The position numbers and the translations under genes are program-made. Of a stretch of DNA of 64,000 nt, positions 36,286 to 64,000 are shown piece after piece. Origin of the DNA: Lepidodermella squamata (taxonomy: Eukaryota; Animalia; Gastrotricha); contig JBLDXI010000057.1 of assembly GCA_047495785.1 (NCBI GenBank), positions 171,583-235,582 of the forward strand, in the 5' to 3' direction. The notes below the pieces were generated by a model that saw only the letters and a program-made list of their open reading frames with translations, did not search any database and was not told the DNA's origin. How positions within the stretch are numbered: position 1 is the first letter of the stretch; each line of letters starts with the position of its first letter.

Positions 36286-36289
36286 TAAT

Positions 36290-37474: not shown

Positions 37475-37526
37475 TTGTTGCGAAAATTAAATTTTGCGAA
37501 ATGACGAAAAGTCAGATCTTAAAGCC

Positions 37527-38190: not shown

Positions 38191-39269
38191 TTAAACTTTT
38201 TTGAGGAAATGGTTGATCAATTCCTCACGGCGTTTGAGCAGCGCCGTTACTTGGTCCATCAGAAGTGGGTGCGTTTCACGGAAATGCGTTGTCAAGCCAT
38301 CACGACGACCGGACCAGGGGGGCGAGCAACCCCTAACGAGGCAGGTCAGTTTCTTTTCACCCGTTTTATCGAAAAGCAATCGATCTTTCCAATCTGGGTC
38401 GTTCTTCAAATGAGCGAAGGCTTTAAGCTCGGCTAGATAGCGCGCCGAGCCTCCGGTAGGGCGTTTCGCAGAGCCCGGGGTGGTTTGAGAGGTCCCCGGC
38501 ACCGATGCCGGTGTTGTCAATGGCCGTTCTATCGAAGTAACAAAAGTAATTTGTGGAAAAGGTGAGAGAACCAGTCACTTACTTGATTTGAGGGCATCGA
38601 GGAATGTATTCTTGCATTCCAACTGTCTTTTCCGCGGTAGTGGCGTGATAATCGGCATACGTTCGACGAGAACCGCTGCCACCATCGGCTGTGTTTGTTC
38701 AGCCATACCGTTGGTTGTTTCGCCCGATGGTTCTTCATCCGCGGTGTCCTTATCGCTCTCGAGCGTAGTCGTAATTTCGACTACCGCAGATTGTTCAGCT
38801 TCGTCTTCCTCGCTGGATGTTTCGAACCCTCCAACATCGTCCGCTTCGCTGATCGTACGTGCTCCAAGGAGGTCGTTGAAGGCACGTTCGGACATGAGGT
38901 CCGCGACATCAGTGTCGGCCAAGTGACCGGCACCTGAAGTTCCAGCCAGATCCATCGGTGTTGCAGGTCGGTTAACCTCCGGTTCCAAAACCGGTGGCGG
39001 AGCAGCAGTGTCCTCAACTCGGCTGGCCGCGGGGGGTCCGCTTTCAACCAGTTGCGTAGCTGTAGACGGGCCAGCGCTGTCATCAAACTGACTAGATGAA
39101 GCCGCATCTATTCCGACGGCAGTTGTTCTGTGTTGGCATGGCAATGGCGGAGGGCGACTAGGGCGGCCAATGGTGACATTTTGAGGTAAGGGACCGCGCC
39201 ATTGATCCGTTCCAGCCCAACGTTTTGGGTCCGTGACCAAGCCTAGGCCAAAGTCCCAGTTGGGCCAAT
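38191..39269 (-). CDS. Family B downstream exons (38583-39269, 38191-38528): acidic disordered region plus C2H2 zinc finger
   Basis: Intron 38529-38582 (GTAAGT..AG) joins the two ORFs in frame; CLVRGC-x13-HFRETH. There is no ATG of its own; the region begins at a TTTTAG acceptor. Confidence 0.82.
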
Positions 39270-39448
39270 CTAAAATTAACTCACGAGTAAAGTGTTTGGG
39301 GAAATGATATGTTGCTGTTTCAATTTATTTACAACCAAAACTTAGGTCACGAGTCATAGTCAAAAGTGTCAATTATCACTTGTATTGTCTTGGAATCCGT
39401 TTGTTGTTGTTGTAGTTGTTGTAGATTAGCCTGTAAACGAACTTATAA

Positions 39449-42341
39449 TTAACCTATAAATTCAGACTTAGTGTATCTTTTTCTGTTGTTTTTGTTTAGT
39501 TTCAGAGCCAGTCGTCCTTTCTGACGAATTAGCGCGTAAGCAGGTTCCAGTGTTTTTACGTATGTTACTACGTTCACCGTTTCATACTTCTGCTTTTTGC
39601 TTTTGGCTTTGATAAATGGCCAAGGGGTGCCTTTCAGTTTCCTCAAGGTATTTTTGATTGTGCTAATTATGAGTGCCCAGGGGTAATCCCTTTTGAGGAG
39701 GCTGTAGCAGAGGGAAAGAGTGGCCGTGGCCCAATCTTCGAAGTTTGAGCAGATTCTGCTATATCGGAGAATTTGGGACTCAATGATGCCTGAAAAAATG
39801 TGGTCAGGGTGCTCCGAGCCATGACATAGAAGTGCCATGTTATCGGTCGGTTTAAAGTAAACCCCTGTTTCGATTTTACCATTTTTCTTATACAGAAAAA
39901 TGTCCAAGTATTGAGCAGACTTATCTGAGATATTCACCTCAAGTTTAATGTTTGGGTGAAGGGTCTTATAGTCCTCCAAGAAGGCTGATGAGCGGTGATT
40001 GTCGAGGAAGATAGTAATTAGATCATCGAGGTATCTACACCCCAGTGGTGGGGAGTAAATTACCCAAAGGTTTCTTTCCTTTATGAAAAGCCAATTGTTA
40101 GCCACCCAGGGGGATAGGTGACCCCCCATAGCTAGTCCTTGTATTTGACGATACCATTTATTGTTGAACTTCACCGTGCTAGAGCTAAGGACGAGGAATA
40201 TAGCTCGGCAGACGAGCCGTCTCTCGTCGTATTCGAGGACTTCAAATTCCCTAAGGTAGGCCGCGATTCCATCTACAGCCTCGTGGAGGGGAATTTGGTT
40301 GTACATGTCGGTAATGTCCGCTGTGGTGATGACTGCATTTCGCAAGTCCTTTCCACTAGCGTTCAAATCCCTGATCTTTTGTAGGACCTCCACGCTACTA
40401 TGTACAACCGTGGTGAGGGTGTGCCTAGCTTGCCGGAGATTCCTGTAGAGGGTTTTATCGGCTTGCGAAGTATAGGTGTTGGTGCCATCGGTAATTGGGC
40501 GGACTTTGAGTAAATTTTCGTTGTCTGGGGGCTTGTGTAATTTTGGTAAGAAGTAGATGTATTTTGTGCGTATCCTGTCTATCTTTTTGAAAAGGCCTTT
40601 CCAGTTTTTCAAAGTATTTGGTGATAGGATGACCCAAGATGATCTTAGCCTGTGTAGGGCGTTTCTGTATTCCGCTAAGCCATCATCGTTGACTTCGCGA
40701 AAAGTTTGGGCATTCTGGAGAAATTTTTCCCCCATGCGACAGTAGGTTATTTTGTTGATTGCAATGACTACATTTCCCTTGTCGCTTTTCGTTACCCAGG
40801 TTCCCTCGGGGACTGTAAGTTCCTCGTTGTCAACTTTAGATAATTCACGCTCAAAAGAATAGAATAGATCACGGCGGGATTTTCGAGTCAAGTTGATTTT
40901 CAATTCCACAAATTTCTTTTCAACATCAAGTAACGTTTTTCTCATGTCTTTCCTATTGACTTTTACGAATTGGAGTCCTTTGGAGAGGGCTTCCTTGAGA
41001 TTGGTTGGCAGTTTCTCTGTTAGATCTATAACCCCTCGTTTTTCCCATTTTTTATTCTCTGCAGAAAGCGAAAGGGCTGGTTGAGAGGAAGTATGAATTG
41101 GTAGCCTATTGGAGAGTGAACTCTCTGATCCAAAAATAGATGATGAAAGGCCCGGGAGATCTTCAAGTATAAGCAGATCCTGGAGGTGACAGTCTATCAG
41201 ATGCCTCCAAAGTTTCCTTTTATTAGTTATATTGGTTGAATGTTCGTTACAGGTGGTGGTAATTATTCCATTGTTCTCAGAGGATGAGATACTACGATTC
41301 GGGTGACCCGGTTCGAATTTAGATGTAAAGAACCATAAAGAGGGTTTGGAAAATAGTGCGTTGATGAGAGTTTTGGTGTTGCATGTTTCTCCAAAAAGGT
41401 TTTCCTCGTGTAGAGTTTCCCAAGTGATTGGTTTGATAATATTAGGAACAGAAATTCTCCTACCTGAACTGACTGTAATGCCAGGGGCAGTCAGGGGTGC
41501 AGTCGGTGTTCCGCCAGTACTGAGCTCAACAGACAACTTTTCATCAATCAAGTGAAGAATGGTTTGAAAGCGTGCGGGTGGATCCGATGGCAGCGTCGTC
41601 CAATCTTGAGCAAGCATTGCCTTTGCGGCACGGCAAATTGCAGCTGCATCCAAGGTTTTGCCTTGTGTTTGCGGTGCGGTGATTAGAGGGAACGGTTTCC
41701 AGTTGAGAAGTATATCGGTTTGAAATGTGAGACTTGAACGATCTGCGGAGCGCCATGAAGACAGTATGGCATCATCGATTGAGCCACGGATGGAGGTCGA
41801 CGCTGATTCATAAATCGGCTTCAAGTCCAGCCACTTTTCAGCAGTGGAAGCCATGGACGCGACGATTTTCAAGCGTTCCTGTTCCGCCACGGCACGAATA
41901 GACACTTCAATTGTATCGTTCACCAGTCCTGGCCACTTTATGAACGCGTGGCACATCATGGCCTCCGCAAGCTAAGGATAAGACAGAATATTAGGTTATT
42001 TTCGATATTAAGGGGGTTAAGTGACTTACTTGTCGAACCACTGTGTTACCGGGGCTGAGGCCCGCAGACTTGGCTTTGTACCCGGCCATCATATTAAAGG
42101 TGGTGATGGCCATTGGCCAAAACGAGTTCAGGACATTAAGTGCTTGTTCGATAAGATCACCACCAGTGCGATTTGACGGTTGCCAGGAACTAAAAGCGGC
42201 ATGGAGAACGTTGGCGACGTCGTTGTTTTGGTCGACCCTAGGTTCATCTGCTTTGTTTCCCCCGTTATGAAATCGTTTAACGGGACCGCCGCGACCGTGA
42301 CCATTGTTGTTCCGATTACGATGGTTATTTGGCATACTCAT
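39449..42341 (-). CDS. Family B RT polyprotein (944 aa after removing intron 41972-42029), no endonuclease
   Basis: YFLPKLHKP, VRPITDG, TADITDMYNQIP, QIQGLAMGG, RYLDDL, GVYFKPTDN..SEHP. The spliced junction VVRQ/LAEAMMC aligns with uninterrupted family C AVRDIAKIVC. Confidence 0.93.
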
Positions 42342-43593
42342 TTCTAGGAAGAGAATGTAAAATATTAGGATGGCTTAGAGGTGTGTGATGAGGGACCGTC
42401 TCAGAGTTAGGGGATCGCCGTACTCACGACACGAGCCAGTGTTAGGGTTGGGTTAGGTTAATTACCAGACGGGAAGCCTAAGCAACCCCGGCATAGAAGC
42501 TCTAGCAATCCCTTTCACTCTTTTGACGGTAATAAAAACGTTTTGCGTACCTGTCAATCCGTTGATTAGCACCAGTTGAGATTATTTCAAACAATTTCAA
42601 TAATTTCCTAAGAAAGAGATTAAATATAATTGAATGTTTGAACATGAATAAGTGTTCTCAAGTCGAGGGTCACTGTAGAACCATAAATCCAGGTTCAATC
42701 AAAGGAGACCTTGAATGAACCGGGATCATAAATGTAGAATTGAAAATGTGGTAGAACCATGTCTTAAGGTTAAACCAGAAGGAAGAAGAAGACCTTGGTT
42801 GAACCAAAACCATAAAGTTGAGGTTGCAAATACGGGTAGAACCATAACTTAAGGTTGAACCGAAAAGGAAACCTTAATTGAACCAAAACTATGAAGTTGA
42901 GGTTGCAGATATGGGTAGAACCGTAATTTTAAGGTTAAACCGAAAAGGAAACCTTAACTGAACCAGAACTATATAGTTAAGGTTGCAAATATGGGTAGAA
43001 CCATAACTTAAGGTTAAACCGAGAAGGAAACCTTAATTGAACCAAAACTATATAGTTAAGGTTGCAAATATGGGTAGAACCATAACTTAAGGTTAAACCG
43101 AGAAGGAAACCTTAATTGAACCAAAACCATAAAGTTGAGGTTGTAAATATGGGTAAAACCATAATTTAAGGTTAAACCGAAAAGGAAACCTTAAACTGAA
43201 CCAGAACTATAAAGTTGAGGTTGCAAATATGGGTAGAACCATAACTTAAGGTTAAACCGAGAAGGAAACCTTAATTGAACCAAAACTGTGAAGTTAAGGT
43301 TACCGTTCCGTTTTTCAAAGGAGAAAAAGGAGAAAAAACCGTAACAATACGCCACCCATGAAGGGGAGCAAAGAATCAAAGGCCACCCGTATAGGGGAGC
43401 GGAAGGAGGCACGCCACCCGTAAAGGGGAGCAACAAAGCAATAGCCACCCATGAAGGGGAGCAATAATTAAAAGCCACCCGTAAAGGGGAGCATACGGAG
43501 AAAGAGCTCAACGTAAAGGTGAGCAAACTGGAAACAACGCCCAGCCGGGTTACCAGACAGTATTGGTGAGAACAGGAGGTCAAAAGCACGCAA

Positions 43594-47133: not shown

Positions 47134-47182
47134 GGTTAGGGTTAGGGTTAGGGTTAGGGTTAGGGTTAGGGTTAGGTTAGGG
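47060..47182 (+). repeat. Telomeric tract capping B and priming C
   Basis: About 20 TTAGGG units. Confidence 0.97.
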
Positions 47183-47714
47183 AAAATACCAGACAGGTAG
47201 CCTAAGCAACCCCGGCAAAGAGGCTCTAATGCAGTTCAACCCGAATGAATTTTTTAAAAATAAACGTGAGCTTACCATGTTCGTTGCTTCTTCCGTGAGA
47301 GTAAAGGCCGATAATACCCAAAGATTTTAACAGAATCTAAAATACAGAAACATACAAATTGTTAGTTACAAGTTAAGGTTACCAGAACCTTAAATAATTT
47401 GCTTTTCAATAGATTGTCAACGTGGACACTAACCATAAGTGATTATAGGTATGTCTCGAAAAGGATAGGGTGTGAACCTTAAGTGGTTTACCCTATACCG
47501 GCTATTCCGTATTTAAACATCTCAAAGTTGAGGTCGAGGCCGAATAGGATTTATGGTTCGCAACCATATCCGGTTACATAGTTCAATCCGACCATAAGCA
47601 TATGAACCTTAACTTAGGTTAAGCTTTAGAGACTACTTCCTTAGTTCAGGGCTCTTGCTGAACCCTAAGTTATTTAGGGTCAGGATACCTTAAGTCAACC
47701 TGAGCAGCCCAGGT

Positions 47715-47948
47715 GCCACCCCAGTTGCGGGAAGCGTGTTTCCAAATGCCACCCATTAGAGGGAAGCCAACCGATTCTGCCACCCGTTGGAGGGAAGCTA
47801 CAAATATGATGCCACCCGTTAAAGGGAAGCCACGAATGTAATGCCACCCGTTGAAGGGAAGCCGAAAAGGTTACGCCACCCTCGTAAGGGAAGCCGACAA
47901 CAAAATGCCACCCATTAGAGGGAAGCTAAGCCACCCGTGGAGGGAAGC
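47715..47948 (-). repeat. Short-hairpin array (GCCACCC-N5/7-GGGAAGC) x8, family C
   Basis: About 32-nt periodicity; copy in C2 at +5889. Confidence 0.87.
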
Positions 47949-48017
47949 ACCCGATAAATTAGTTGCGGAGCGGTATGCGGTGTAATAACCTAATGTAATA
48001 CGAGAGATAGTAAGCAA

Positions 48018-48070
48018 CGCCCATAGTGCCAGACCGGTTTCGCCTGTGGGCGGCAGGCTCGTCAGTGACT
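48018..48070 (-). ncRNA. Hammerhead ribozyme (C1)
   Basis: GUCA-CUGACGA-GCCUG(CCGCCCA)CAGGC-GAAA-CCGG-UC/UGGC..UGGGCG. Confidence 0.92.
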
Positions 48071-48124
48071 CTAGTTGCTTAAAACAAAATCCGCTCAAAT
48101 GATGAAAATGTTCGAAAATAAGGC

Positions 48125-48190
48125 TTTTTATACTGCGGTCCCTTCCGCCATTTTGGAAAAAATCGTGGCACGTGGGTTTTGGCGCGAAAA
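48125..48190 (-). promoter_or_regulatory. Putative promoter (E2F-like, E-box, YY1-like, TATA), C1
   Basis: On the - strand: TTTTCGCGCCAAA, CACGTG, AAAATGGCGG, TATAAAAA. Confidence 0.62.
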
Positions 48191-48804
48191 TTTTTCTAGA
48201 AACTGATGTTATTTCCATAACCCAGTGCTAGTGGTTAGCTTATTTCCAACGGTTGAAACGTTTTGGAATTTATTAGCCGCAGGTGATTTCAAGGTCGTTT
48301 AGCCGCAGGTGATAGACTTAGAGTTAAGGTTTCATACTTATGGTTCGAGTTAAGGTTTCATACTTATGGTTCGCCTAGTCTTAGTGTTGGCGGTCTTCTG
48401 ACCACAAGTTAAATAACCGGCCGAATAGTCGTTTTAGGGTTGTCCTCGATAAGATAAGGTTCTTTTCAGTTCCGCTATTTGTTCAAGTCCCAAAACCTTA
48501 AGTTCTGGTTTCACACCGTAAGGTGGATTTAAGGTTACAGATATTCGTTAGTTTATTTCCACCTTCCTGAAGTGGATTTAAGGTTAGGGTCCTGTAGTTC
48601 GATTTCAATTTCCACGTTGATTCAGGTTGCCCAACCTTAAGTTGTTACTTAAGGTTACGGTTTCTGATTATCTTCGGACCCATTTGTTTCTGTTTCATTC
48701 TGCCTGGAGTTAAGGTTCACACGGTTGTAAAAGTCGTGAATTAGTTCAACAATGTGTTTTATTTCAGAAACTTCATCACTCACACTCACTTGACACAAAT
48801 CACC

Positions 48805-49982
48805 TCAAAAGTCACCCTTCTTCAGGATCTCAGCGCGGAGACGAAGACGTTCTTCATCCAGTGCTTGGGCCTGGACTAGCTGGTCTTTCTCGTGGTTCTT
48901 CAAGAAGTGTCCAAGTAGACCGTCCGACCTAGTGCAAGTGAACTTGCAGGATCCAATTCGGCAGAGGATGATCGATCCAGGCTTTTTGCCCGGGACCCGG
49001 GGAGCTTGCTCCACCCGTTCCCAGACAAGGGCGCCCTCGTAGTTCTCGCGCAGTTTTTCCCATGCAAGACTTTCGGCGACAGATCTAGCGGAACCTCCCG
49101 CAAGTCTCCGACCAGAAGTCGTGGGTCCACGGGCTGGAGTGCTGGCGATAGAGAATGAACAACCACCGGTCGATGACGACGAGCGTTCTGTGACAAGGTA
49201 AAGTTGAAGTTAAGGTTGCAATCTCCTTTAAAGAAATATCTTACCTTCCAAAGACGGAAGTGGTCGCTTGCGATTCGCCCTGTTGACTGTAGGCTCCGAT
49301 GTCGAAGCCATGGACACATTGTAGCGGGGTGCTGGCGATGAGGCTGCCGAACTCGTGGCGCTGCTGAATTCCAGTGGGGTTGAGGTTGCGCCTCCTCTCA
49401 GAGGTCGTCCGAACATATCGATATCTATGAAAAGATCGCGATCGAGGCGGACAACACAATCCTTAGTCGACAATCTCGGGTCTGGAGTTCCCAGGGTCGC
49501 ATCCGGCTGAAGTGTTGATTCCGAGGATGAGCTTTCACTATCTGAGCGTGAAAGCGCATCACGTGTCTCTTCGGGCAGCTCGTCCGCTGACATTTCAATA
49601 GCATCCTCGGTAGCCGATCTCACCGGAGAATCGGTTATCACGATGACGCCGCCCTGCTCCCGTTCCGGTGCTGCGTTGCTGGTAGCGGTTCCACCGTTAT
49701 CCTGGTCAGGCTTGGGATCTGCGTTGACTTGCTCGGTATCGTCGTCCAGCAGGTCAAGGGCTTCCTGGAGGGTAGCCGAGTCCGCGGCAGAGAAGCTACC
49801 CAAGCCGCTGAAAGTAGAAGCGCAAATTTCGGGACCATTGCTCGTCGATGGCAGCTCGAGCCTGTGACCAATGGTGACGGGCGAGGGGCACGGAGCCCTC
49901 CAGGCCGACTCAGGAGCCCAGCGACCGGTATCGTAGGTTGTCCCGAAGTTGAAGAATCTCCAACTCGGTGAAGCCGTGTCAG
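48805..49982 (-). CDS. Family C downstream exons (49245-49982, 48805-49187): disordered region plus C2H2 zinc finger
   Basis: Intron 49188-49244 (GTAAGA..CAG) restores the frame; GGSAR and the zinc finger CRIGSC-x12-HFLKNH align with family B; begins at a polypyrimidine TTTCCAG acceptor. Confidence 0.82.
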
Positions 49983-50151
49983 CTGGAAATGTTGTTATAG
50001 GGTTACGGGTATAAAGAAAAGGGTAAAAAGGCAAGTAAATTTGCACCAACTGTTTTATTTCTCACAAATGTTAGTATCATGGTGGATCATCGTCAAATGT
50101 CATTGTTCAGGGCCATAGTTGCGTTGAATGATGTCTTGTGTTGTTGTTTCT

Positions 50152-52986
50152 TTAGCTCTGACCTAGAAATTCAGATTTAGTGAAACGTTTACGATTATTT
50201 TTATTAAGACGAAGGGCCATTTTTCCTTTCCTTCGGATCAGGCTGTATGCGGGTTGAAGTGCTTTAGCATAGTGTAAAACGTGCATTGTCTCGTAATTTT
50301 TCTTTTTCTGCCGGTTGTTGTTGATAAAGGGCCACGTCTTTCCCTCCAATTTTGACAAAGTGCTTTTTGTGACTTTTGAGAGTAGAGTCCAAGAGTACCC
50401 CCGTTTAACCAAGCTGTTGAAAAGGGAGAGCGTTGCATACGCCCAGTCTGAGAACGTTGAGGCAATTCTGCTGAAGCGTAGAATTTGGGATTCAATGACA
50501 CCACTGAAAATGTGCTCTGGGTGCTCTGATCCATAACTGAGCAAGGCGAGGTTATCAGTAGGTTTGAAGTAGACGCCCGTCTCTAGCCTACCCTGTTTTT
50601 TATAGATAACCATATCCAAGTATTGGCCACTAGTCTGGGAAGAGGACACTTCAAGTTTGATATTTGGGTGCAGTTTTTTGTAATCTTCTTCAAAAGATGA
50701 TGATCTTTGGTTGCTGAGAAAAATCGTGAGGAGGTCATCGAGGTAACGGCAACCGAGGGGTGGTGAATAGATAAGCCAGAGTTTTCTTTCCAAGATGAAT
50801 AACCAGTTATTAGCCACCCATGGGGAGAGATGGCCCCCCATTGCCAACCCTTGGATCTGTTGGTACCATTTGTTGTTAAATTTCACCCTGCTGGAGCATA
50901 GTACGAGGTAAATAGCTTTGCATACTAATCTTCGTTCTTCAGGCTCGAAAACTTCATATTCCCGCAGATAAATTGCCACACCGTCCACCGCCTCCTTTAG
51001 GGGTATCTGGTTGTACATATCGCTGATGTCAGCAGTCATGATGACCGCTTCATCCAAGTTCCGACCACTTTCATTCAGTTCCCTGATTTTCTGTAAGACC
51101 TCTGTGCTGCTATGCACAACAGTTGTGAGGGTATGCCTAGCCCTGCGCAGTTTTTTGTAGAGTGTTTTGTCGGCTTGGGAGGTGTAGGTATTAGTACCAT
51201 CTGTGATGGGTCGAACCTTAAGTAGCCCTTCCTCGTCCGGGGCCTTATGGAGTTTCGGGAGAAAGTAAATAAATTTCGAGCGAAGTTTTTGTTGTCTTAC
51301 AAAGATCCCTTTCCATTTCCTCAGTGTGCCAGGGGAAATTTGTAGCCATGATGATTTTAATTGAGACAAAGCCTCTCGATATCCCGCGAAGCCGTCATCC
51401 TCAACAACTCGAAAATTAGTTGCGTTGTTCAAAAATTTTTCACCCATACGACAATAGGTGCTCTTGTCTAGAGCTAAAGTGACGTTACCTTTGTCACTTT
51501 TAGTGATCCAAACGTTCGGTCCTAGTTCTGGGGTTTTATTCTCAAGGCGCGTCATTTCTATGGCGGTCCCGGCGTGTAATTCCCTTCGGGATCTCCTGCT
51601 CAGCTGAATGCCCAGTTCCTTAAATTTTTCCTCCACTTCCTGGAGGGATTTTTGAAGATCTTTTTTGGTCAGTTTGACAAATTGAAATCCCTTCGCTAGG
51701 GTTGCCTTAACCTCTTCAGATAAACTATTAGTAAGGTCAACAACACCTTTTTTCTCCCAGATCTTGTTTTCCTCGGAAAGATTGAGGGCTGGTTGCCTAG
51801 AGCTGTGAATCGGTAGGTTACCCGGGACGATACAGTTTTCACCGTACAAGGATTTAGTGAATGAAGGGAAATCCTCCATGACGAAGAGGTCGTATATGTG
51901 GCAATCTACAAGGTGTTTCCATAACTTCCCGGGTGCAGAGAAAGTGGAGCGGTGTTTACTACAAGAGACAGTGAACCCGTCTGAATTTTCTGAAGTCAGG
52001 CAATTGCTGGGGTGCCCCGGTTCCCAACGGGCTGAGAAATGCCACACCGAGGGTTCCGTGAAAAGCTGTTTTATAACAACTCCAACCCTACACAAAGTTT
52101 TATTACCCATCAAGTTATCCAAGTATCCCCAAGTAATGTCCTTGATTCCGCTAGGAGTAAAAACAATTTTCCTACCTGAGGCTCCAGAGGCTCCTGCCTG
52201 TGGAGCAGTCGGCAGCCCGCCATTGGTGAGCTCCAAGCCCAGTTTTTCATCAACCAGATGTACCAATGTGCGCAATCTGACTGCTTTGTCGCCTCCAACT
52301 CCATTCCAATCATGGGCAATGACGGCCTGCGTTGCACGGCAGATCCCGGACTTGTCGAGCGTTTTACCAGCATTGCGGGGTGCGGCAATGAGAGGGAACG
52401 GCTGCCAAGTCACTGTGAAGTCCGCGCTGATACCAAGCCCTTCTTTATCGGCGGCCCTGTAAGTCGCCGCGAGAGCGTCATCCAGCGCTGCCTTGACCGG
52501 AGGTGTCGCAGACTCGTAGATCTCCTTGAGACTTAACCATTTCTCAGCTGCTCTGGCGAGGTTAACCGTAATTTTTAATCGTAGCTTCTCTCCCACCAGT
52601 TTCAGCGACAGGTCGACCGCCTCATTGGCCAGTGGTTCGTAATCCAAGATGTCGTTGTCGCAAACGATCTTCGCGATGTCGCGAACTGCCGGGTCAGACA
52701 GAGGAGATAGACTCAAAACTTTGGTCTTGTAGCCATCCATTTCCTTGAACACGCGGAACGTTTGACGCCAAAAATCATTGAATAGTTGCGTAGCGCGTTC
52801 AGTCGAGTCGCCGCCGGTTCGGTTCGTCGGGTTGAAGGCCGATAGAAAGGCCGTAAAGCGATCATTCGAACTCGAGGACCGCCCATCATCCGAGCGACGA
52901 TCGCCGTGCTGACCATCGAAACGCTTCCGATTGTACTTGCCGTTGCCGTTACCGTTGCCGAATCGATTGTTGTGGTTACCAGGCAT
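50152..52986 (-). CDS. Family C RT polyprotein (944 aa), no endonuclease
   Basis: Intact ORF with YFLPKLHK, TADISDMYNQIP, GLAMGG, RYLDDL, GVYFKPTDN..SEHP. Confidence 0.95.
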   Translation of the reverse strand: MPGNHNNRFGNGNGNGKYNRKRFDGQHGDRRSDDGRSSSSNDRFTAFLSAFNPTNRTGGDSTERATQLFNDFWRQTFRVFKEMDGYKTKVLSLSPLSDPAVRDIAKIVCDNDILDYEPLANEAVDLSLKLVGEKLRLKITVNLARAAEKWLSLKEIYESATPPVKAALDDALAATYRAADKEGLGISADFTVTWQPFPLIAAPRNAGKTLDKSGICRATQAVIAHDWNGVGGDKAVRLRTLVHLVDEKLGLELTNGGLPTAPQAGASGASGRKIVFTPSGIKDITWGYLDNLMGNKTLCRVGVVIKQLFTEPSVWHFSARWEPGHPSNCLTSENSDGFTVSCSKHRSTFSAPGKLWKHLVDCHIYDLFVMEDFPSFTKSLYGENCIVPGNLPIHSSRQPALNLSEENKIWEKKGVVDLTNSLSEEVKATLAKGFQFVKLTKKDLQKSLQEVEEKFKELGIQLSRRSRRELHAGTAIEMTRLENKTPELGPNVWITKSDKGNVTLALDKSTYCRMGEKFLNNATNFRVVEDDGFAGYREALSQLKSSWLQISPGTLRKWKGIFVRQQKLRSKFIYFLPKLHKAPDEEGLLKVRPITDGTNTYTSQADKTLYKKLRRARHTLTTVVHSSTEVLQKIRELNESGRNLDEAVIMTADISDMYNQIPLKEAVDGVAIYLREYEVFEPEERRLVCKAIYLVLCSSRVKFNNKWYQQIQGLAMGGHLSPWVANNWLFILERKLWLIYSPPLGCRYLDDLLTIFLSNQRSSSFEEDYKKLHPNIKLEVSSSQTSGQYLDMVIYKKQGRLETGVYFKPTDNLALLSYGSEHPEHIFSGVIESQILRFSRIASTFSDWAYATLSLFNSLVKRGYSWTLLSKVTKSTLSKLEGKTWPFINNNRQKKKNYETMHVLHYAKALQPAYSLIRRKGKMALRLNKNNRKRFTKSEFLGQS

Positions 52987-53906
52987 CTAAGAGAATATTA
53001 AACAAATTCATTAGTGAGCTGAACTAACATCGCACGTACGGCACAAGCAAATTGTTAGGGTTAGTTTAGGGAAAATACCAGACAGGTAGCCTAAGCAACC
53101 CCGGCAAAGAGGCTCTAATGCAGTTCAACCCGAATGAATTTTTTAAAAATAAACGTGAGCTTACCATGTTCGTTGCTTCTTCCGTGAGAGTAAAGGCCGA
53201 TAATACCCAAAGATTTTAACAGAATCTAAAATACAGAAACATACAAATTGTTAGTTACAAGTTAAGGTTACCAGAACCTTAAATAATTTGCTTTTCAATA
53301 GATTGTCAACGTGGACACTAACCATAAGTGATTATAGGTATGTCTCGAAAAGGATAGGGTGTGAACCTTAAGTGGTTTACCCTATACCGGCTATTCCGTA
53401 TTTAAACATCTCAAAGTTGAGGTCGAGGCCGAATAGGATTTATGGTTCGCAACCATATCCGGTTACATAGTTCAATCCGACCATAAGCATATGAACCTTA
53501 ACTTAGGTTAAGCTTTAGAGACTACTTCCTTAGTTCAGGGCTCTTGCTGAACCCTAAGTTATTTAGGGTCAGGATACCTTAAGTCAACCTGAGCAGCCCA
53601 GGTGCCACCCCAGTTGCGGGAAGCGTGTTTCCAAATGCCACCCATTAGAGGGAAGCCAACCGATTCTGCCACCCGTTGGAGGGAAGCTACAAATATGATG
53701 CCACCCGTTAAAGGGAAGCCACGAATGTAATGCCACCCGTTGAAGGGAAGCCGAAAAGGTTACGCCACCCTCGTAAGGGAAGCCGACAACAAAATGCCAC
53801 CCATTAGAGGGAAGCTAAGCCACCCGTGGAGGGAAGCACCCGATAAATTAGTTGCGGAGCGGTATGCGGTGTAATAACCTAATGTAATACGAGAGATAGT
53901 AAGCAA

Positions 53907-53959
53907 CGCCCATAGTGCCAGACCGGTTTCGCCTGTGGGCGGCAGGCTCGTCAGTGACT
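53907..53959 (-). ncRNA. Hammerhead ribozyme (C2)
   Basis: Same sequence as in C1. Confidence 0.92.
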
Positions 53960-54693
53960 CTAGTTGCTTAAAACAAAATCCGCTCAAATGATGAAAATGT
54001 TCGAAAATAAGGCTTTTTATACTGCGGTCCCTTCCGCCATTTTGGAAAAAATCGTGGCACGTGGGTTTTGGCGCGAAAATTTTTCTAGAAACTGATGTTA
54101 TTTCCATAACCCAGTGCTAGTGGTTAGCTTATTTCCAACGGTTGAAACGTTTTGGAATTTATTAGCCGCAGGTGATTTCAAGGTCGTTTAGCCGCAGGTG
54201 ATAGACTTAGAGTTAAGGTTTCATACTTATGGTTCGAGTTAAGGTTTCATACTTATGGTTCGCCTAGTCTTAGTGTTGGCGGTCTTCTGACCACAAGTTA
54301 AATAACCGGCCGAATAGTCGTTTTAGGGTTGTCCTCGATAAGATAAGGTTCTTTTCAGTTCCGCTATTTGTTCAAGTCCCAAAACCTTAAGTTCTGGTTT
54401 CACACCGTAAGGTGGATTTAAGGTTACAGATATTCGTTAGTTTATTTCCACCTTCCTGAAGTGGATTTAAGGTTAGGGTCCTGTAGTTCGATTTCAATTT
54501 CCACGTTGATTCAGGTTGCCCAACCTTAAGTTGTTACTTAAGGTTACGGTTTCTGATTATCTTCGGACCCATTTGTTTCTGTTTCATTCTGCCTGGAGTT
54601 AAGGTTCACACGGTTGTAAAAGTCGTGAATTAGTTCAACAATGTGTTTTATTTCAGAAACTTCATCACTCACACTCACTTGACACAAATCACC

Positions 54694-55871
54694 TCAAAAG
54701 TCACCCTTCTTCAGGATCTCAGCGCGGAGACGAAGACGTTCTTCATCCAGTGCTTGGGCCTGGACTAGCTGGTCTTTCTCGTGGTTCTTCAAGAAGTGTC
54801 CAAGTAGACCGTCCGACCTAGTGCAAGTGAACTTGCAGGATCCAATTCGGCAGAGGATGATCGATCCAGGCTTTTTGCCCGGGACCCGGGGAGCTTGCTC
54901 CACCCGTTCCCAGACAAGGGCGCCCTCGTAGTTCTCGCGCAGTTTTTCCCATGCAAGACTTTCGGCGACAGATCTAGCGGAACCTCCCGCAAGTCTCCGA
55001 CCAGAAGTCGTGGGTCCACGGGCTGGAGTGCTGGCGATAGAGAATGAACAACCACCGGTCGATGACGACGAGCGTTCTGTGACAAGGTAAAGTTGAAGTT
55101 AAGGTTGCAATCTCCTTTAAAGAAATATCTTACCTTCCAAAGACGGAAGTGGTCGCTTGCGATTCGCCCTGTTGACTGTAGGCTCCGATGTCGAAGCCAT
55201 GGACACATTGTAGCGGGGTGCTGGCGATGAGGCTGCCGAACTCGTGGCGCTGCTGAATTCCAGTGGGGTTGAGGTTGCGCCTCCTCTCAGAGGTCGTCCG
55301 AACATATCGATATCTATGAAAAGATCGCGATCGAGGCGGACAACACAATCCTTAGTCGACAATCTCGGGTCTGGAGTTCCCAGGGTCGCATCCGGCTGAA
55401 GTGTTGATTCCGAGGATGAGCTTTCACTATCTGAGCGTGAAAGCGCATCACGTGTCTCTTCGGGCAGCTCGTCCGCTGACATTTCAATAGCATCCTCGGT
55501 AGCCGATCTCACCGGAGAATCGGTTATCACGATGACGCCGCCCTGCTCCCGTTCCGGTGCTGCGTTGCTGGTAGCGGTTCCACCGTTATCCTGGTCAGGC
55601 TTGGGATCTGCGTTGACTTGCTCGGTATCGTCGTCCAGCAGGTCAAGGGCTTCCTGGAGGGTAGCCGAGTCCGCGGCAGAGAAGCTACCCAAGCCGCTGA
55701 AAGTAGAAGCGCAAATTTCGGGACCATTGCTCGTCGATGGCAGCTCGAGCCTGTGACCAATGGTGACGGGCGAGGGGCACGGAGCCCTCCAGGCCGACTC
55801 AGGAGCCCAGCGACCGGTATCGTAGGTTGTCCCGAAGTTGAAGAATCTCCAACTCGGTGAAGCCGTGTCAG
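54694..55871 (-). CDS. Family C downstream ZnF exons, copy in C2
   Basis: Duplicate of 48805-49982 at +5889. Confidence 0.75.
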
Positions 55872-56040
55872 CTGGAAATGTTGTTATAGGGTTACGGGTA
55901 TAAAGAAAAGGGTAAAAAGGCAAGTAAATTTGCACCAACTGTTTTATTTCTCACAAATGTTAGTATCATGGTGGATCATCGTCAAATGTCATTGTTCAGG
56001 GCCATAGTTGCGTTGAATGATGTCTTGTGTTGTTGTTTCT

Positions 56041-58718
56041 TTAGCTCTGACCTAGAAATTCAGATTTAGTGAAACGTTTACGATTATTTTTATTAAGACG
56101 AAGGGCCATTTTTCCTTTCCTTCGGATCAGGCTGTATGCGGGTTGAAGTGCTTTAGCATAGTGTAAAACGTGCATTGTCTCGTAATTTTTCTTTTTCTGC
56201 CGGTTGTTGTTGATAAAGGGCCACGTCTTTCCCTCCAATTTTGACAAAGTGCTTTTTGTGACTTTTGAGAGTAGAGTCCAAGAGTACCCCCGTTTAACCA
56301 AGCTGTTGAAAAGGGAGAGCGTTGCATACGCCCAGTCTGAGAACGTTGAGGCAATTCTGCTGAAGCGTAGAATTTGGGATTCAATGACACCACTGAAAAT
56401 GTGCTCTGGGTGCTCTGATCCATAACTGAGCAAGGCGAGGTTATCAGTAGGTTTGAAGTAGACGCCCGTCTCTAGCCTACCCTGTTTTTTATAGATAACC
56501 ATATCCAAGTATTGGCCACTAGTCTGGGAAGAGGACACTTCAAGTTTGATATTTGGGTGCAGTTTTTTGTAATCTTCTTCAAAAGATGATGATCTTTGGT
56601 TGCTGAGAAAAATCGTGAGGAGGTCATCGAGGTAACGGCAACCGAGGGGTGGTGAATAGATAAGCCAGAGTTTTCTTTCCAAGATGAATAACCAGTTATT
56701 AGCCACCCATGGGGAGAGATGGCCCCCCATTGCCAACCCTTGGATCTGTTGGTACCATTTGTTGTTAAATTTCACCCTGCTGGAGCATAGTACGAGGTAA
56801 ATAGCTTTGCATACTAATCTTCGTTCTTCAGGCTCGAAAACTTCATATTCCCGCAGATAAATTGCCACACCGTCCACCGCCTCCTTTAGGGGTATCTGGT
56901 TGTACATATCGCTGATGTCAGCAGTCATGATGACCGCTTCATCCAAGTTCCGACCACTTTCATTCAGTTCCCTGATTTTCTGTAAGACCTCTGTGCTGCT
57001 ATGCACAACAGTTGTGAGGGTATGCCTAGCCCTGCGCAGTTTTTTGTAGAGTGTTTTGTCGGCTTGGGAGGTGTAGGTATTAGTACCATCTGTGATGGGT
57101 CGAACCTTAAGTAGCCCTTCCTCGTCCGGGGCCTTATGGAGTTTCGGGAGAAAGTAAATAAATTTCGAGCGAAGTTTTTGTTGTCTTACAAAGATCCCTT
57201 TCCATTTCCTCAGTGTGCCAGGGGAAATTTGTAGCCATGATGATTTTAATTGAGACAAAGCCTCTCGATATCCCGCGAAGCCGTCATCCTCAACAACTCG
57301 AAAATTAGTTGCGTTGTTCAAAAATTTTTCACCCATACGACAATAGGTGCTCTTGTCTAGAGCTAAAGTGACGTTACCTTTGTCACTTTTAGTGATCCAA
57401 ACGTTCGGTCCTAGTTCTGGGGTTTTATTCTCAAGGCGCGTCATTTCTATGGCGGTCCCGGCGTGTAATTCCCTTCGGGATCTCCTGCTCAGCTGAATGC
57501 CCAGTTCCTTAAATTTTTCCTCCACTTCCTGGAGGGATTTTTGAAGATCTTTTTTGGTCAGTTTGACAAATTGAAATCCCTTCGCTAGGGTTGCCTTAAC
57601 CTCTTCAGATAAACTATTAGTAAGGTCAACAACACCTTTTTTCTCCCAGATCTTGTTTTCCTCGGAAAGATTGAGGGCTGGTTGCCTAGAGCTGTGAATC
57701 GGTAGGTTACCCGGGACGATACAGTTTTCACCGTACAAGGATTTAGTGAATGAAGGGAAATCCTCCATGACGAAGAGGTCGTATATGTGGCAATCTACAA
57801 GGTGTTTCCATAACTTCCCGGGTGCAGAGAAAGTGGAGCGGTGTTTACTACAAGAGACAGTGAACCCGTCTGAATTTTCTGAAGTCAGGCAATTGCTGGG
57901 GTGCCCCGGTTCCCAACGGGCTGAGAAATGCCACACCGAGGGTTCCGTGAAAAGCTGTTTTATAACAACTCCAACCCTACACAAAGTTTTATTACCCATC
58001 AAGTTATCCAAGTATCCCCAAGTAATGTCCTTGATTCCGCTAGGAGTAAAAACAATTTTCCTACCTGAGGCTCCAGAGGCTCCTGCCTGTGGAGCAGTCG
58101 GCAGCCCGCCATTGGTGAGCTCCAAGCCCAGTTTTTCATCAACCAGATGTACCAATGTGCGCAATCTGACTGCTTTGTCGCCTCCAACTCCATTCCAATC
58201 ATGGGCAATGACGGCCTGCGTTGCACGGCAGATCCCGGACTTGTCGAGCGTTTTACCAGCATTGCGGGGTGCGGCAATGAGAGGGAACGGCTGCCAAGTC
58301 ACTGTGAAGTCCGCGCTGATACCAAGCCCTTCTTTATCGGCGGCCCTGTAAGTCGCCGCGAGAGCGTCATCCAGCGCTGCCTTGACCGGAGGTGTCGCAG
58401 ACTCGTAGATCTCCTTGAGACTTAACCATTTCTCAGCTGCTCTGGCGAGGTTAACCGTAATTTTTAATCGTAGCTTCTCTCCCACCAGTTTCAGCGACAG
58501 GTCGACCGCCTCATTGGCCAGTGGTTCGTAATCCAAGATGTCGTTGTCGCAAACGATCTTCGCGATGTCGCGAACTGCCGGGTCAGACAGAGGAGATAGA
58601 CTCAAAACTTTGGTCTTGTAGCCATCCATTTCCTTGAACACGCGGAACGTTTGACGCCAAAAATCATTGAATAGTTGCGTAGCGCGTTCAGTCGAGTCGC
58701 CGCCGGTTCGGTTCGTCG
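56041..58718 (-). pseudogene. Family C RT ORF in C2 lacking its first ~52 codons
   Basis: Matches C1 up to 58718, where the inversion junction removes the ATG. Confidence 0.85.
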
Positions 58719-58721: not shown

Positions 58722-60390
58722 ACGAGCTGCCCGAAGAGACACGTGATGCGCTTTCACGCTCAGATAGTGAAAGCTCATCCTCGGAATCAACACTTCAGCC
58801 GGATGCGACCCTGGGAACTCCAGACCCGAGATTGTCGACTAAGGATTGTGTTGTCCGCCTCGATCGCGATCTTTTCATAGATATCGATATGTTCGGACGA
58901 CCTCTGAGAGGAGGCGCAACCTCAACCCCACTGGAATTCAGCAGCGCCACGAGTTCGGCAGCCTCATCGCCAGCACCCCGCTACAATGTGTCCATGGCTT
59001 CGACATCGGAGCCTACAGTCAACAGGGCGAATCGCAAGCGACCACTTCCGTCTTTGGAAGGTAAGATATTTCTTTAAAGGAGATTGCAACCTTAACTTCA
59101 ACTTTACCTTGTCACAGAACGCTCGTCGTCATCGACCGGTGGTTGTTCATTCTCTATCGCCAGCACTCCAGCCCGTGGACCCACGACTTCTGGTCGGAGA
59201 CTTGCGGGAGGTTCCGCTAGATCTGTCGCCGAAAGTCTTGCATGGGAAAAACTGCGCGAGAACTACGAGGGCGCCCTTGTCTGGGAACGGGTGGAGCAAG
59301 CTCCCCGGGTCCCGGGCAAAAAGCCTGGATCGATCATCCTCTGCCGAATTGGATCCTGCAAGTTCACTTGCACTAGGTCGGACGGTCTACTTGGACACTT
59401 CTTGAAGAACCACGAGAAAGACCAGCTAGTCCAGGCCCAAGCACTGGATGAAGAACGTCTTCGTCTCCGCGCTGAGATCCTGAAGAAGGGTGACTTTTGA
59501 GGTGATTTGTGTCAAGTGAGTGTGAGTGATGAAGTTTCTGAAATAAAACACATTGTTGAACTAATTCACGACTTTTACAACCGTGTGAACCTTAACTCCA
59601 GGCAGAATGAAACAGAAACAAATGGGTCCGAAGATAATCAGAAACCGTAACCTTAAGTAACAACTTAAGGTTGGGCAACCTGAATCAACGTGGAAATTGA
59701 AATCGAACTACAGGACCCTAACCTTAAATCCACTTCAGGAAGGTGGAAATAAACTAACGAATATCTGTAACCTTAAATCCACCTTACGGTGTGAAACCAG
59801 AACTTAAGGTTTTGGGACTTGAACAAATAGCGGAACTGAAAAGAACCTTATCTTATCGAGGACAACCCTAAAACGACTATTCGGCCGGTTATTTAACTTG
59901 TGGTCAGAAGACCGCCAACACTAAGACTAGGCGAACCATAAGTATGAAACCTTAACTCGAACCATAAGTATGAAACCTTAACTCTAAGTCTATCACCTGC
60001 GGCTAAACGACCTTGAAATCACCTGCGGCTAATAAATTCCAAAACGTTTCAACCGTTGGAAATAAGCTAACCACTAGCACTGGGTTATGGAAATAACATC
60101 AGTTTCTAGAAAAATTTTCGCGCCAAAACCCACGTGCCACGATTTTTTCCAAAATGGCGGAAGGGACCGCAGTATAAAAAGCCTTATTTTCGAACATTTT
60201 CATCATTTGAGCGGATTTTGTTTTAAGCAACTAGAGTCACTGACGAGCCTGCCGCCCACAGGCGAAACCGGTCTGGCACTATGGGCGTTGCTTACTATCT
60301 CTCGTATTACATTAGGTTATTACACCGCATACCGCTCCGCAACTAATTTATCGGGTGCTTCCCTCCACGGGTGGCTTAGCTTCCCTCTAA
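58722..60390 (+). mobile_element. Inverted fragment of family C (reverse complement of about 47915-49583)
   Basis: The same ORFs appear on the opposite strand; includes the ZnF exon, promoter block and hammerhead; capped by telomeric repeats. Confidence 0.93.
60235..60287 (+). ncRNA. Hammerhead ribozyme in the inverted C fragment
   Basis: AGTCACTGACGAGCCTGCCGCCCACAGGCGAAACCGGTCTGGCACTATGGGCG. Confidence 0.92.
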
Positions 60391-60582
60391 GGGTTTGGGT
60401 TAGAGTTAGGGTTAGGGTTGGGTTAGGGTTAGGGTTAGGGTTAGGGTTAGGGTTAGGGTTAGGGTTAGGGTTAGGGTTAGGGTTAGGGTTAGGGTTAGGG
60501 TTAGGGTTAGGGTTAGGGTTAGGGTTAGGGTTAGGGTTAGGGTTAGGGTTAGGGTTAGGGTTAGGGTTAGGGTTAGGGTTAG
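60391..60582 (+). repeat. Telomeric tract (about 32 units, first few variant)
   Basis: GGGTTTGGGTTAGAGTTAGGG... followed by regular TTAGGG. Confidence 0.97.
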
Positions 60583-61129
60583 TTTAGGGAAAATACCAGA
60601 CAGGTAGCCTAAGCAACCCCGGCAAGGAGGCTCTAGTGCAGCCCAGCTCAAATAAAATACCGTAATCCTTGATCGAGGCTTAGAGGAGGTTCAGTATTGG
60701 TTGAACTGTGGTATCAACAGTTCCGTAGAGTAGACAAGGGTCTTTCAATGTATGTAAACAGATCATCTCCAGGTTGAGGTTCCCGAACCCTAAGTGGTTC
60801 AAGCTCAGACAAAAATGGCGTGTGCACCATAACTCAGTCAGAGGAACGCCTGTTCAGGATCAGCGCTCCTTTCGTTGGGAAATCGTCACCCGAGAGCACG
60901 CCAGGAAGAGCGACACCCGAACCTTAAGTAACCCTGTAGCATTTCACAGATTACTCCCGGTCCATCCTGCAACCTAAGCCAAGGATGACATTCCAGAAGC
61001 TCAAGTTATTCCAAAAGGTGAACCCTAACTGATGTTGGGCTCGATTTGTGATCTCCCTGTGTCTGAGATCACGATGACCCCCAAGTTATTTAGGGTTGGA
61101 AGGCTTGAAGTCATCCTGCAAGCTGAGAT

Positions 61130-61276
61130 GCCACCCTAGTAGCGGGAAGCGTAATTCCAGATGCCACCCATTGGAGGGAAGCCAACAACGCAATGCCACC
61201 CATTAGAGGGAAGCCAATATCACAATGCCACCCTTGCGGGAAGCCTTTTTCGCCTTGCCACCCGTAAAGGGAAGCA
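61130..61276 (-). repeat. Short-hairpin array x5, family D
   Basis: GCCACCC-N4/7-GGGAAGC; copy at +1793. Confidence 0.85.
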
Positions 61277-61370
61277 CTTGGTAATGTGGTGGAAAAGAGC
61301 AGTACTCGACAATTGCGATTGTCGCATATTCCTAGGAAAAGTAGGAAATAAAGTTATTGATGTCAAGCAA

Positions 61371-61423
61371 CGCCCATAGTGTCAGACCGGTTTCGCCTGT
61401 GGGCAGCAGGCTCATCAGTGACT
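61371..61423 (-). ncRNA. Hammerhead ribozyme (D1)
   Basis: GUCA-CUGAUGA-GCCUG(CUGCCCA)CAGGC-GAAA-CCGG-UC/UGAC..UGGGCG. Confidence 0.93.
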
Positions 61424-61478
61424 CTAGTTGCTTAGACCAAAATCCGCTCGAATGAAGAAAACGCTCCGAAATACGGCC

Positions 61479-61539
61479 TTATATACCGCGATCTCTTCCG
61501 CTATTACAACATACGTGCCACGTGGCTTTGGCGCGAAAA
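61479..61539 (-). promoter_or_regulatory. Putative promoter (E2F-like, E-box, TATA), D1
   Basis: On the - strand: TTTTCGCGCCAAA, CACGTG, TATATAA. Confidence 0.58.
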
Positions 61540-63163
61540 CCCTTTCTGCCATCTGATACAATTCTCGTAATATACGGTTAGAGGTTAGCTTATTTCCAAG
61601 AGTTGACATGCTTTGGAATTAATTAGCCGCAGGTGACAGACTTAGAGTTAAGGTTCCCTACTTGGGGTATTACAAAACCAGGTTTGGCGCTTTAGGGTTA
61701 AGGTTAAGGTTCGCTGTTCTCTGATCATGCTTTTATTAACACAACTTATCTAGTTAGTTAAGGTCATCTCGTTTAGCATTTGGAGAAATTCGATCTGTTG
61801 TTGTTCATCATATCCCTTGAAGTGTCTTATCTCTGTCGCGTGATGAGACATCTAATCTTCGAACTCTAAGGTTCATACACATAGATGACAGGTCAAGAGG
61901 CCCTACCTTTGCTACAACAAGCTTGTAAAATATCTTGTTACCGATACGGGGAAGCTGAAACAGCCGTTGAGTATGGAGTGAATCCATACCAGTCACAATT
62001 CCCTGTGCGTACACAGTCATTACTTCGTTCATGATCGTAATGAGTTTTAAGGTCACACTATGGGTTGTTCCCGGGATTTTGATATCAACAAACCATAAAT
62101 GCAACGCAAACTCAGGCCACTACTTATCCACATATGGATTACATGAGAGAATTGATGACTGCCACTGACTAGCTAGTGTCCTAATTGTTCATCCCATATC
62201 GATCGATATAAATAGGGTAAATACAACCCGAAGAGGCTCCATGTCATCGAAGTAAACCGAGTATGATTGAGTTCTGATGGAGGATTGTTAACGAAACGAC
62301 CATTAAGTTGGTCAGGTATAATAAATGAGCCAAACTGACACCGCACGTACGGCACAAGCAAATTGTTAGGGTTAGTTTAGGGAAAATACCAGACAGGTAG
62401 CCTAAGCAACCCCGGCAAGGAGGCTCTAGTGCAGCCCAGCTCAAATAAAATACCGTAATCCTTGATCGAGGCTTAGAGGAGGTTCAGTATTGGTTGAACT
62501 GTGGTATCAACAGTTCCGTAGAGTAGACAAGGGTCTTTCAATGTATGTAAACAGATCATCTCCAGGTTGAGGTTCCCGAACCCTAAGTGGTTCAAGCTCA
62601 GACAAAAATGGCGTGTGCACCATAACTCAGTCAGAGGAACGCCTGTTCAGGATCAGCGCTCCTTTCGTTGGGAAATCGTCACCCGAGAGCACGCCAGGAA
62701 GAGCGACACCCGAACCTTAAGTAACCCTGTAGCATTTCACAGATTACTCCCGGTCCATCCTGCAACCTAAGCCAAGGATGACATTCCAGAAGCTCAAGTT
62801 ATTCCAAAAGGTGAACCCTAACTGATGTTGGGCTCGATTTGTGATCTCCCTGTGTCTGAGATCACGATGACCCCCAAGTTATTTAGGGTTGGAAGGCTTG
62901 AAGTCATCCTGCAAGCTGAGATGCCACCCTAGTAGCGGGAAGCGTAATTCCAGATGCCACCCATTGGAGGGAAGCCAACAACGCAATGCCACCCATTAGA
63001 GGGAAGCCAATATCACAATGCCACCCTTGCGGGAAGCCTTTTTCGCCTTGCCACCCGTAAAGGGAAGCACTTGGTAATGTGGTGGAAAAGAGCAGTACTC
63101 GACAATTGCGATTGTCGCATATTCCTAGGAAAAGTAGGAAATAAAGTTATTGATGTCAAGCAA

Positions 63164-63216
63164 CGCCCATAGTGTCAGACCGGTTTCGCCTGTGGGCAGC
63201 AGGCTCATCAGTGACT
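63164..63216 (-). ncRNA. Hammerhead ribozyme (D2)
   Basis: Same sequence as in D1. Confidence 0.93.
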
Positions 63217-64000
63217 CTAGTTGCTTAGACCAAAATCCGCTCGAATGAAGAAAACGCTCCGAAATACGGCCTTATATACCGCGATCTCTTCCGCTATTAC
63301 AACATACGTGCCACGTGGCTTTGGCGCGAAAACCCTTTCTGCCATCTGATACAATTCTCGTAATATACGGTTAGAGGTTAGCTTATTTCCAAGAGTTGAC
63401 ATGCTTTGGAATTAATTAGCCGCAGGTGACAGACTTAGAGTTAAGGTTCCCTACTTGGGGTATTACAAAACCAGGTTTGGCGCTTTAGGGTTAAGGTTAA
63501 GGTTCGCTGTTCTCTGATCATGCTTTTATTAACACAACTTATCTAGTTAGTTAAGGTCATCTCGTTTAGCATTTGGAGAAATTCGATCTGTTGTTGTTCA
63601 TCATATCCCTTGAAGTGTCTTATCTCTGTCGCGTGATGAGACATCTAATCTTCGAACTCTAAGGTTCATACACATAGATGACAGGTCAAGAGGCCCTACC
63701 TTTGCTACAACAAGCTTGTAAAATATCTTGTTACCGATACGGGGAAGCTGAAACAGCCGTTGAGTATGGAGTGAATCCATACCAGTCACAATTCCCTGTG
63801 CGTACACAGTCATTACTTCGTTCATGATCGTAATGAGTTTTAAGGTCACACTATGGGTTGTTCCCGGGATTTTGATATCAACAAACCATAAATGCAACGC
63901 AAACTCAGGCCACTACTTATCCACATATGGATTACATGAGAGAATTGATGACTGCCACTGACTAGCTAGTGTCCTAATTGTTCATCCCACTCTCACGAGA

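Follow-up and report, generated by a model that had tools for sequence, protein, structure and literature searches.

How does a repeated sequence that encodes no reverse transcriptase (RT) come to be laid, in tandem, on a telomere? This question is raised by the end of contig C57 (JBLDXI010000057.1) in the assembly of the gastrotrich Lepidodermella squamata (GCA_047495785.1), a 121-Mb animal genome. The window analyzed here is the last 64 kb of this contig, and all positions are numbered within it unless another contig is named. Its outermost part, 60572-63989, contains 1.9 tandem copies of element D, placed beyond three families of RT-encoding elements (A, B and C). An earlier reading, made from the sequence alone, had described D as an RT-less element of 1.8 kb that parasitises family C. 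The analysis reported here leads to a similar picture, corrected in several parts: D is probably a non-autonomous, non-coding member of a community of endonuclease-free, telomere-attached Penelope-like elements (PLEs), copied in trans by an RT of the C type.

D is RT-less and non-coding. The 1,793-bp unit contains no open reading frame (ORF) longer than 98 amino acids (aa), and none conserved in relatives, from which it differs by indels that are mostly not multiples of three. No RT is encoded: tblastn and tblastx comparisons with the proteins of families A, B and C gave no match. When the D-specific stretches were compared by tblastx with all retrieved chromosome ends, the only sequences matched were an RT-less relative, named D2, and D3, its truncated inverted copy at the end of contig C46; since these matches are seen in every frame, they reflect similarity at the nucleotide level, not coding. 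In this respect the sequence-only reading was correct.

The relation between D and C was evaluated by BLAST of D against the window and by block-wise alignment. The 5' leader (sense 1-39, plus-strand D 1755-1793) is 90% identical to that of C, and matches neither B nor D2; the 3' block (sense 1724-1793, plus-strand D 1-70) is 96-97% identical to C (E 1e-26 to 2e-28), as compared to 85% for B and 81% for D2. Inside the unit, an array of repeated two-arm motifs (plus-strand D 504-704) is 74% identical to the C array, or 83% in the best local alignment (sense 1088-1245). A further block, including a hammerhead and the sequence upstream of it (plus-strand D 794-1092), is 80.5% identical to C (E 2e-66); identity is 96% in the hammerhead itself (sense 931-1010), which the sequence-only reading had listed as kept, and 79% in the upstream block (sense 729-930). 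The terminal sequences of D are thus closer to C than to the other families, and the arms of its motifs are of the type found in C (GCTTCCC..GGGTGGC), as opposed to that shared by B and D2 (GCTCCCC..GGGTGGC). The tie to family C, through the two ends, the motif array and the hammerhead block, is solid.

The remainder of the unit is of a different nature. Plus-strand D 71-503 and D 1093-1754 show no match to C by either procedure; sense 83-728 has no match in A, B, C or F, the last being a family described below; sense 1246-1723 is essentially unalignable with C, with the exception of ACTTARGGTTC motifs, UUAGGG-like in the D sense RNA. Where the interior is homologous, it diverges from C by 17-26%, while the ends diverge by only 3-10%. 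According to the sequence-only reading, the coding region had been replaced by about 0.7 kb of unrelated sequence: the stretch is indeed unrelated to C, but it is not an orphan, being 72-76% identical to a part of D2. An origin of D from the C copies beside it, by loss of an internal part, was considered and rejected because of the interior divergence and of the module shared with D2; the case named in advance as fatal to the idea, a single-locus deletion derivative, applies to D as to the single locus, but not as to a recent deletion of the neighbouring C.

D is joined to telomere repeats in the canonical way, in agreement with the original proposal: the TTAGGG tract runs into the 3' block at 60572-60578, the fusion point lying within D's own telomere-like tract. 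The orientation is fixed, with the D sense strand on the other side from the G strand, and A, B and C show the same arrangement. The G strand enters the antisense strand of each element, beginning at the element 3' end, which is the orientation predicted for priming on a G-rich overhang. The organization of the arrays is common to all families: an array begins at a telomere-like tract; complete units follow, with a short junction of constant sequence between them, and the last unit is truncated and either capped by new telomere repeats or folded back. The two D units are identical at all 1625 comparable positions; the two C units differ by one mismatch, located within the telomere-like tract, before the truncation of the second unit. 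As the junction is identical in C and D, it must be templated, which excludes its addition by telomerase after one event and before the next; separate events look different, as is seen from the long telomere tracts that lie between one family and another. The first D copy keeps the whole telomere-like tract, while the first C copy differs at one base (47176 vs 53065), the outer part of its tract having been replaced by true repeats. This difference indicates two events, primed in different registers; the single base changed in C would fit a priming site one repeat deeper than that of D.

A leader/priming block common to C and D was a central point of the sequence-only reading. The identity was found to be real, extending over 77 nucleotides (nt) at the C-C junction (53031-53107) and at the D-D junction (62342-62418). 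The sequence is not a single block, however, but a composite of three parts: from the 5' end of one unit, read in antisense, come its last 24 nt; a telomere-like tract of 17 nt follows, and then the 3' block belonging to the adjoining unit. Seven tandem junctions were aligned, from C, D, B, a C-like element on contig C20, D2 and the families E and F. For these, RNAalifold predicts a helix that would enclose the telomere-complementary tract; one strand, of about 11 nt, lies immediately upstream of the 3' block, and the other, of about 12 nt, falls within the 5' leader of the next unit. Eight of its ten pairs change on both sides somewhere among the seven junctions, and 90% of the cells are paired. 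Over the structure as a whole, covariation scores 0.333, as compared to 0.172 ± 0.025 in shuffled alignments (0 of 500 reach the observed value), and 94.8% of the cells are paired, a figure that falls to 30-42% when the partners are slid by 1-3 columns. Between D and C, the helix differs by one double compensatory change (C-G vs U-A) and by four changes that preserve pairing through wobbles. Two forms of RNA would accommodate the predicted helix equally well: a linear RNA of unit length, folded as a panhandle, or a multi-unit or circular RNA, in which the pairing would span the junction. A second pairing is predicted between the invariant GGGGUUG of the 3' block (60590-60625; also present in C and B) and UAACCCU of the telomere-complementary tract (alignment columns 28-34 with 68-74); its columns show no covariation, and it would mask the priming site.

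Two further RT-less families were found in the same genome. D2 is present as a 3.2-kb element on contig C20 (12736-15935), an adjacent 312-nt 3' fragment, a fold-back at the end of contig C46 and a 5'-truncated copy on contig C21. These copies are mutually 98.6-100% identical, which suggests recent mobility, and every copy adjoins a telomeric tract of its own, whether short or long: D2 must therefore have inserted independently at telomeres at least four times, at three contig ends other than this one. No Penelope-type RT is found in D2. The copy on contig C20 bears, in antisense, a 339-aa RT fragment of the type of long interspersed nuclear elements (LINEs), with a FADD motif (C20:14176-15195, minus strand); the copy on contig C21 is without this 1.26-kb LINE stretch, and D2 is accordingly about 1.9 kb long, near the size of D.

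When D is compared to the D2 copies on contigs C20 and C46, the module is 72-76% (76%) identical and the block upstream of the hammerhead 80%, while the ends differ. Indels are frequent in the module; its consensus fold includes 11 compensatory pairs, from two lineages only. The 5' leader, the 3' block, the TGCTCCCC-type motif arms and the 79-nt repeats of D2 are of family-B type, where those of D are of family-C type. The block upstream of the hammerhead, in turn, is common to D2, C and D (80%) and is not found in B, in spite of the B-type ends, arms and 3' repeats of D2. Such a mosaic points to modular exchange between co-resident elements, possibly via template switching. The other RT-less family, E, consists of eight tandem units of 1,605 bp, 100% identical, at the end of contig C32 (C32:4488086-4500925); both its 5' and its 3' end match those of F, an autonomous 6.2-kb family on contig C13. 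Three passenger/helper pairs (D-C, D2-B and E-F) are thus present in one genome, matched at both ends, pair by pair. This matching is the strongest comparative argument for recognition in trans, and the broader idea of RT-less passengers gains support from the two additional pairs and from the repeated insertion of D2 at telomeres.

Besides its ends, D retains an internal set of conserved features. Its hammerhead is of the minimal Penelope type by sequence, with all core nucleotides, stem II and a palindromic helix III, and is 94-96% conserved across B, C, D and D2; cleavage is predicted after the C at 61385. At relaxed thresholds, the Rfam match of the D hammerhead reaches only 21.6 bits (E-value 0.35), below threshold; a scan of the whole window at gathering thresholds gave no match. 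A snoRNA match, also obtained at relaxed thresholds, was discarded as chance-level. Five two-arm motifs are kept in the array, with variable loops and spacers, and the sense strand of the array is 13 kcal/mol more stable than the antisense one. A TATA-like box (TATATA, 61480-61485), located some 95 nt upstream of the position where the hammerhead is predicted to cut, is kept in C, in the C-like element on contig C20 and in D. What D retains may define the minimal cis-acting set, as was originally suggested, although the promoter part of this set is weak.

Several results weigh against copying of D by C in trans. The sequence-only reading proposed a count of D copies at other chromosome ends; exact D is present at one locus only in this assembly, and its two copies could stem from a single event or from DNA-level duplication. 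The cut site of the hammerhead lies 813 nt from the D 3' end (60572) and does not adjoin the telomere-complementary tract; a different conserved stem-loop region is found beside that tract. The array, read initially as a series of hairpins, folds no better than shuffled sequences (z -0.37 in sense, -0.52 in antisense), so that its members are to be described as conserved two-arm motifs and not as proven hairpins. The TATA-like box is not kept in D2. Finally, covariation in the junction structure comes from only three truly independent lineages, with the structure predicted from the same sequences, and a covariance-model search of the whole genome for the junction domain recovered no lineages beyond those aligned.

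The single locus, the identity of the two copies and the interruption of the array by the contig end would all be expected if D were a dead local product, that is, a rearranged fragment which landed once and was doubled by DNA-level recombination, giving a subtelomeric satellite with no ongoing mobilisation in trans. We regard this as unlikely. The D interior differs by 17-26% from the C copies beside it, and D2 alone has a module related to that of D; both ends have remained at 90-97% identity while the interior drifted, and the differences between D and C in the end-pairing helix preserve pairing. Moreover, the deposition of RT-less units on telomeres is a repeated occurrence, as D2 and E demonstrate, and the tandem junction of D is the same templated sequence as in C.

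The exchange of modules introduces another alternative: D might be mobilised by an RT other than that of C, such as a B- or F-type PLE or a LINE, its C-type ends being a recent recombinational acquisition without function. D and D2 do share the module and the upstream block while carrying C-type and B-type ends, respectively, and D2 contains the antisense LINE RT fragment. Yet each of the three RT-less families agrees with a single autonomous family, both in its two ends and in the type of its motifs, as predicted by partner-specific recognition; in D, LINE-type insertion features are absent and the junction is of the telomere-primed type. An RT of non-C origin thus appears very unlikely. Use of the D array by the host, as a non-coding RNA or capping locus for telomere protection, would fit the chromosome-end position, the UUAGGG-like motifs in the sense RNA and the conserved non-coding module, but is highly improbable for a single locus with identical, young copies, where the module is only 72-76% conserved, with frequent indels, and no selection was found beyond the element ends.

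Mobilisation of D by the C-type RT, the preferred explanation, may proceed as follows. A tandem array would be transcribed into D RNA, with a start that may lie in the conserved block adjoining the hammerhead on its upstream side; the helix between its 5' and 3' ends would hold the telomere-complementary tract in a structured domain; proteins encoded by C would bind, in trans, this domain and the motif array; the G-rich 3' overhang of the chromosome would then anneal to the tract and prime reverse transcription. The constant junction and the identity of the tandem copies point to a template that probably exceeds one unit in length or is a circle, on which synthesis would begin internally, and the same data suggest a single reverse-transcription event per array; such an event would deposit n full units plus a partial one. 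To our knowledge, the way in which the RT of endonuclease-free PLEs recognises its RNA is not known. For an endonuclease-containing PLE, from the anole, multi-copy transcripts and internal initiation of reverse transcription have been reported, and hammerhead cleavage is unneeded in vitro (PMC11167929).

A more specific scheme may be proposed, though we hold it to be doubtful. The template would be a junction-spanning RNA, either multi-unit or circularised after hammerhead cleavage, in which the covarying helix encloses the tract, as telomerase RNA encloses its template. A telomerase-related RT would start inside this RNA on the 3' overhang, and may run round it, laying identical units; D, D2 and E would be free-standing template RNAs, which swap junction domains in order to borrow RTs.

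The context of D within the window is summarized in Table 1. Host genes, including Cys-loop ion channels and a P4-ATPase, are found in the first 26 kb; by themselves they mark the host no more closely than as an animal, a protein-atlas search with one host gene gave no phylum, and the contig does not resemble human DNA. From about 30 kb to the window end there are five TTAGGG tracts on the plus strand, and the gaps between them are filled by retroelements, with all their ORFs and hammerheads on the minus strand. The proteins encoded by families A, B and C show weak RVT_1 matches. For the C protein the nearest protein clusters are from rotifers and basidiomycetes, which fits with the endonuclease-free, telomere-attached Penelope-like elements Athena and Coprina (PMC8557442). 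The truncated second C unit abuts a further C copy in the inverted orientation (58722-60393; sense 3471-5142), whose identity to C is 99.9%; the break of this copy falls within its own motif array, and is followed by the telomere repeats that lead to D. The history of the end follows this order: A and B came first, then the two C units, the second being truncated and joined to the inverted copy; telomere repeats healed the broken inverted copy, and D was then primed on that tract. Similar fold-backs terminate the E array on contig C32 and a D2 copy on contig C46.

The last 11 bases of the window belong to an untrimmed sequencing adapter, so the D array is cut by a read end and the 1.9 copies need not be its full number. 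The adapter 16-mer, CTCTCACGAGATGTGT, which starts with these bases, has 181 occurrences in the assembly, most of them where a contig begins or ends, which indicates that contig ends are read ends; some occurrences are internal, and may mark chimeric joins.

Table 1. Position of element D, its parts and the neighbouring features in the window
Feature	Position	Strand	Description
Family B units	36265-42437		
Family C, presumed helper	47165-58718	-	5,889-bp unit, twice in tandem; truncation of the second copy at sense position 225
C 944-aa ORF with RT domain	50152-52986	-	intact
Telomere tract	60394-60578	+	about 185 bp, degenerate then perfect TTAGGG, on the broken inverted C copy
D copy 1	60572-62364	-	1,793 bp; 3' end toward the telomere tract
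D 3' block	60572-60641	-	telomere-complementary tract and conserved stem-loop region; 3' half of the junction domain
D variable 3' region	60642-61074	-	unalignable to C except for three or four ACTTARGGTTC motifs, in conserved order
D motif array	61120-61277	-	five GCTTCCC-N4-7-GGGTGGC, about 31 nt apart; C-type arms, sense strand only
D hammerhead, minimal type I	61355-61434	-	CUGAUGAG, stem II, CGAAAC, palindromic ACCGGU helix III
D block upstream of hammerhead	61435-61636	-	TATA-like box (61479-61486) and CACGTG; putative internal promoter
D 0.65-kb non-coding module	61637-62282	-	absent from A, B, C and F; 72-76% identical to RT-less D2
D 5' leader	62326-62364	-	5' half of the junction domain; 90% identity with C; predicted pairing partner immediately upstream of the 3' block
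D copy 2	62365-63989	-	1625/1625 bases identical to copy 1; cut by the contig end
Untrimmed sequencing adapter	63990-64000	.	outside D, not genome

Among known systems, Athena, Coprina and the Terminons are similar to D in their head-to-tail attachment to telomere repeats, via a short 3' tract of reverse-complement telomere sequence, in the presence of 5'-truncated copies capped by new repeats, and in the minimal type I hammerhead. Terminon units, according to a review, always contain an RT (PMC5537684), while D has none, and is therefore to be considered a derivative or passenger, not a strict member, of the endonuclease-free PLEs. Their hammerheads also differ in location, since that of Athena and Terminons adjoins the telomere-complementary tract (PMC6431247), far from which the D hammerhead is found; the TTAGGG telomere of the D host is a further difference from the three systems.

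The term retrozyme, applied to D by the sequence-only reading and implying a circular RNA produced through hammerhead cleavage, describes a resemblance only. Animal retrozymes of the non-LTR kind (without long terminal repeats) are, like D, non-coding sequences repeated in tandem, each unit bearing a single type I hammerhead, and have been proposed as passengers of PLEs (PMC7229834, PMC7761336, bioRxiv 10.64898/2026.07.22.740005). Their units and circular RNAs, however, measure about 170-400 nt (PMC7229834), so that the D unit is 4-10 times the known animal size; known retrozymes are dispersed and not telomere-primed. D shares both ends and the motif array with a named partner.

Non-autonomous derivatives of PLEs are known in the Chlamys clade (PMC8557442). 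These elements, for example MRC1, belong to an endonuclease-containing clade of green algae and insert inside chromosomes; D differs in being telomere-primed and in sharing also the 5' end with its partner. HeT-A of Drosophila, found with TART/TAHRE, is like D telomere-specific, has no pol and is presumed to use the RT of a partner, template and enzyme coming from different genetic units (PMC5537684). It is, however, a non-LTR element of the jockey clade, which encodes Gag and replaces telomerase repeats, while D encodes nothing and coexists with TTAGGG. In pairs formed by LINEs and short interspersed nuclear elements, the non-coding parasite bears the recognition sequence of its partner at the 3' end; in D the 5' end is shared as well, and paired with the 3' region, and the primer is a chromosome end, not a nick.

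The kind of element to which D belongs is therefore already known, from telomere-attached endonuclease-free PLEs, Chlamys derivatives, retrozyme passengers and the HeT-A/TART system. New features are an RT-less, telomere-primed passenger with partner-specific ends, a module common to passengers with different partners, and a covarying 5'-3' helix round the priming tract. An RT-less passenger is a natural deletion map of cis-acting signals, here the paired ends, the repeated two-arm motif and the hammerhead block, and the three pairs with pairwise matching ends make recognition specificity directly testable. The finding would connect the unexplained animal "retrozymes" to a defined helper, and the proposed division of labour between D and C parallels that between HeT-A and TART at fly telomeres. 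Among retroelements, no group is more closely related to telomerase than the endonuclease-free PLEs: if the scheme of the junction-spanning template were true, free-standing template RNAs such as D would represent, in a living animal, a stage intermediate between a retroelement and telomerase, where enzyme and template are separate.

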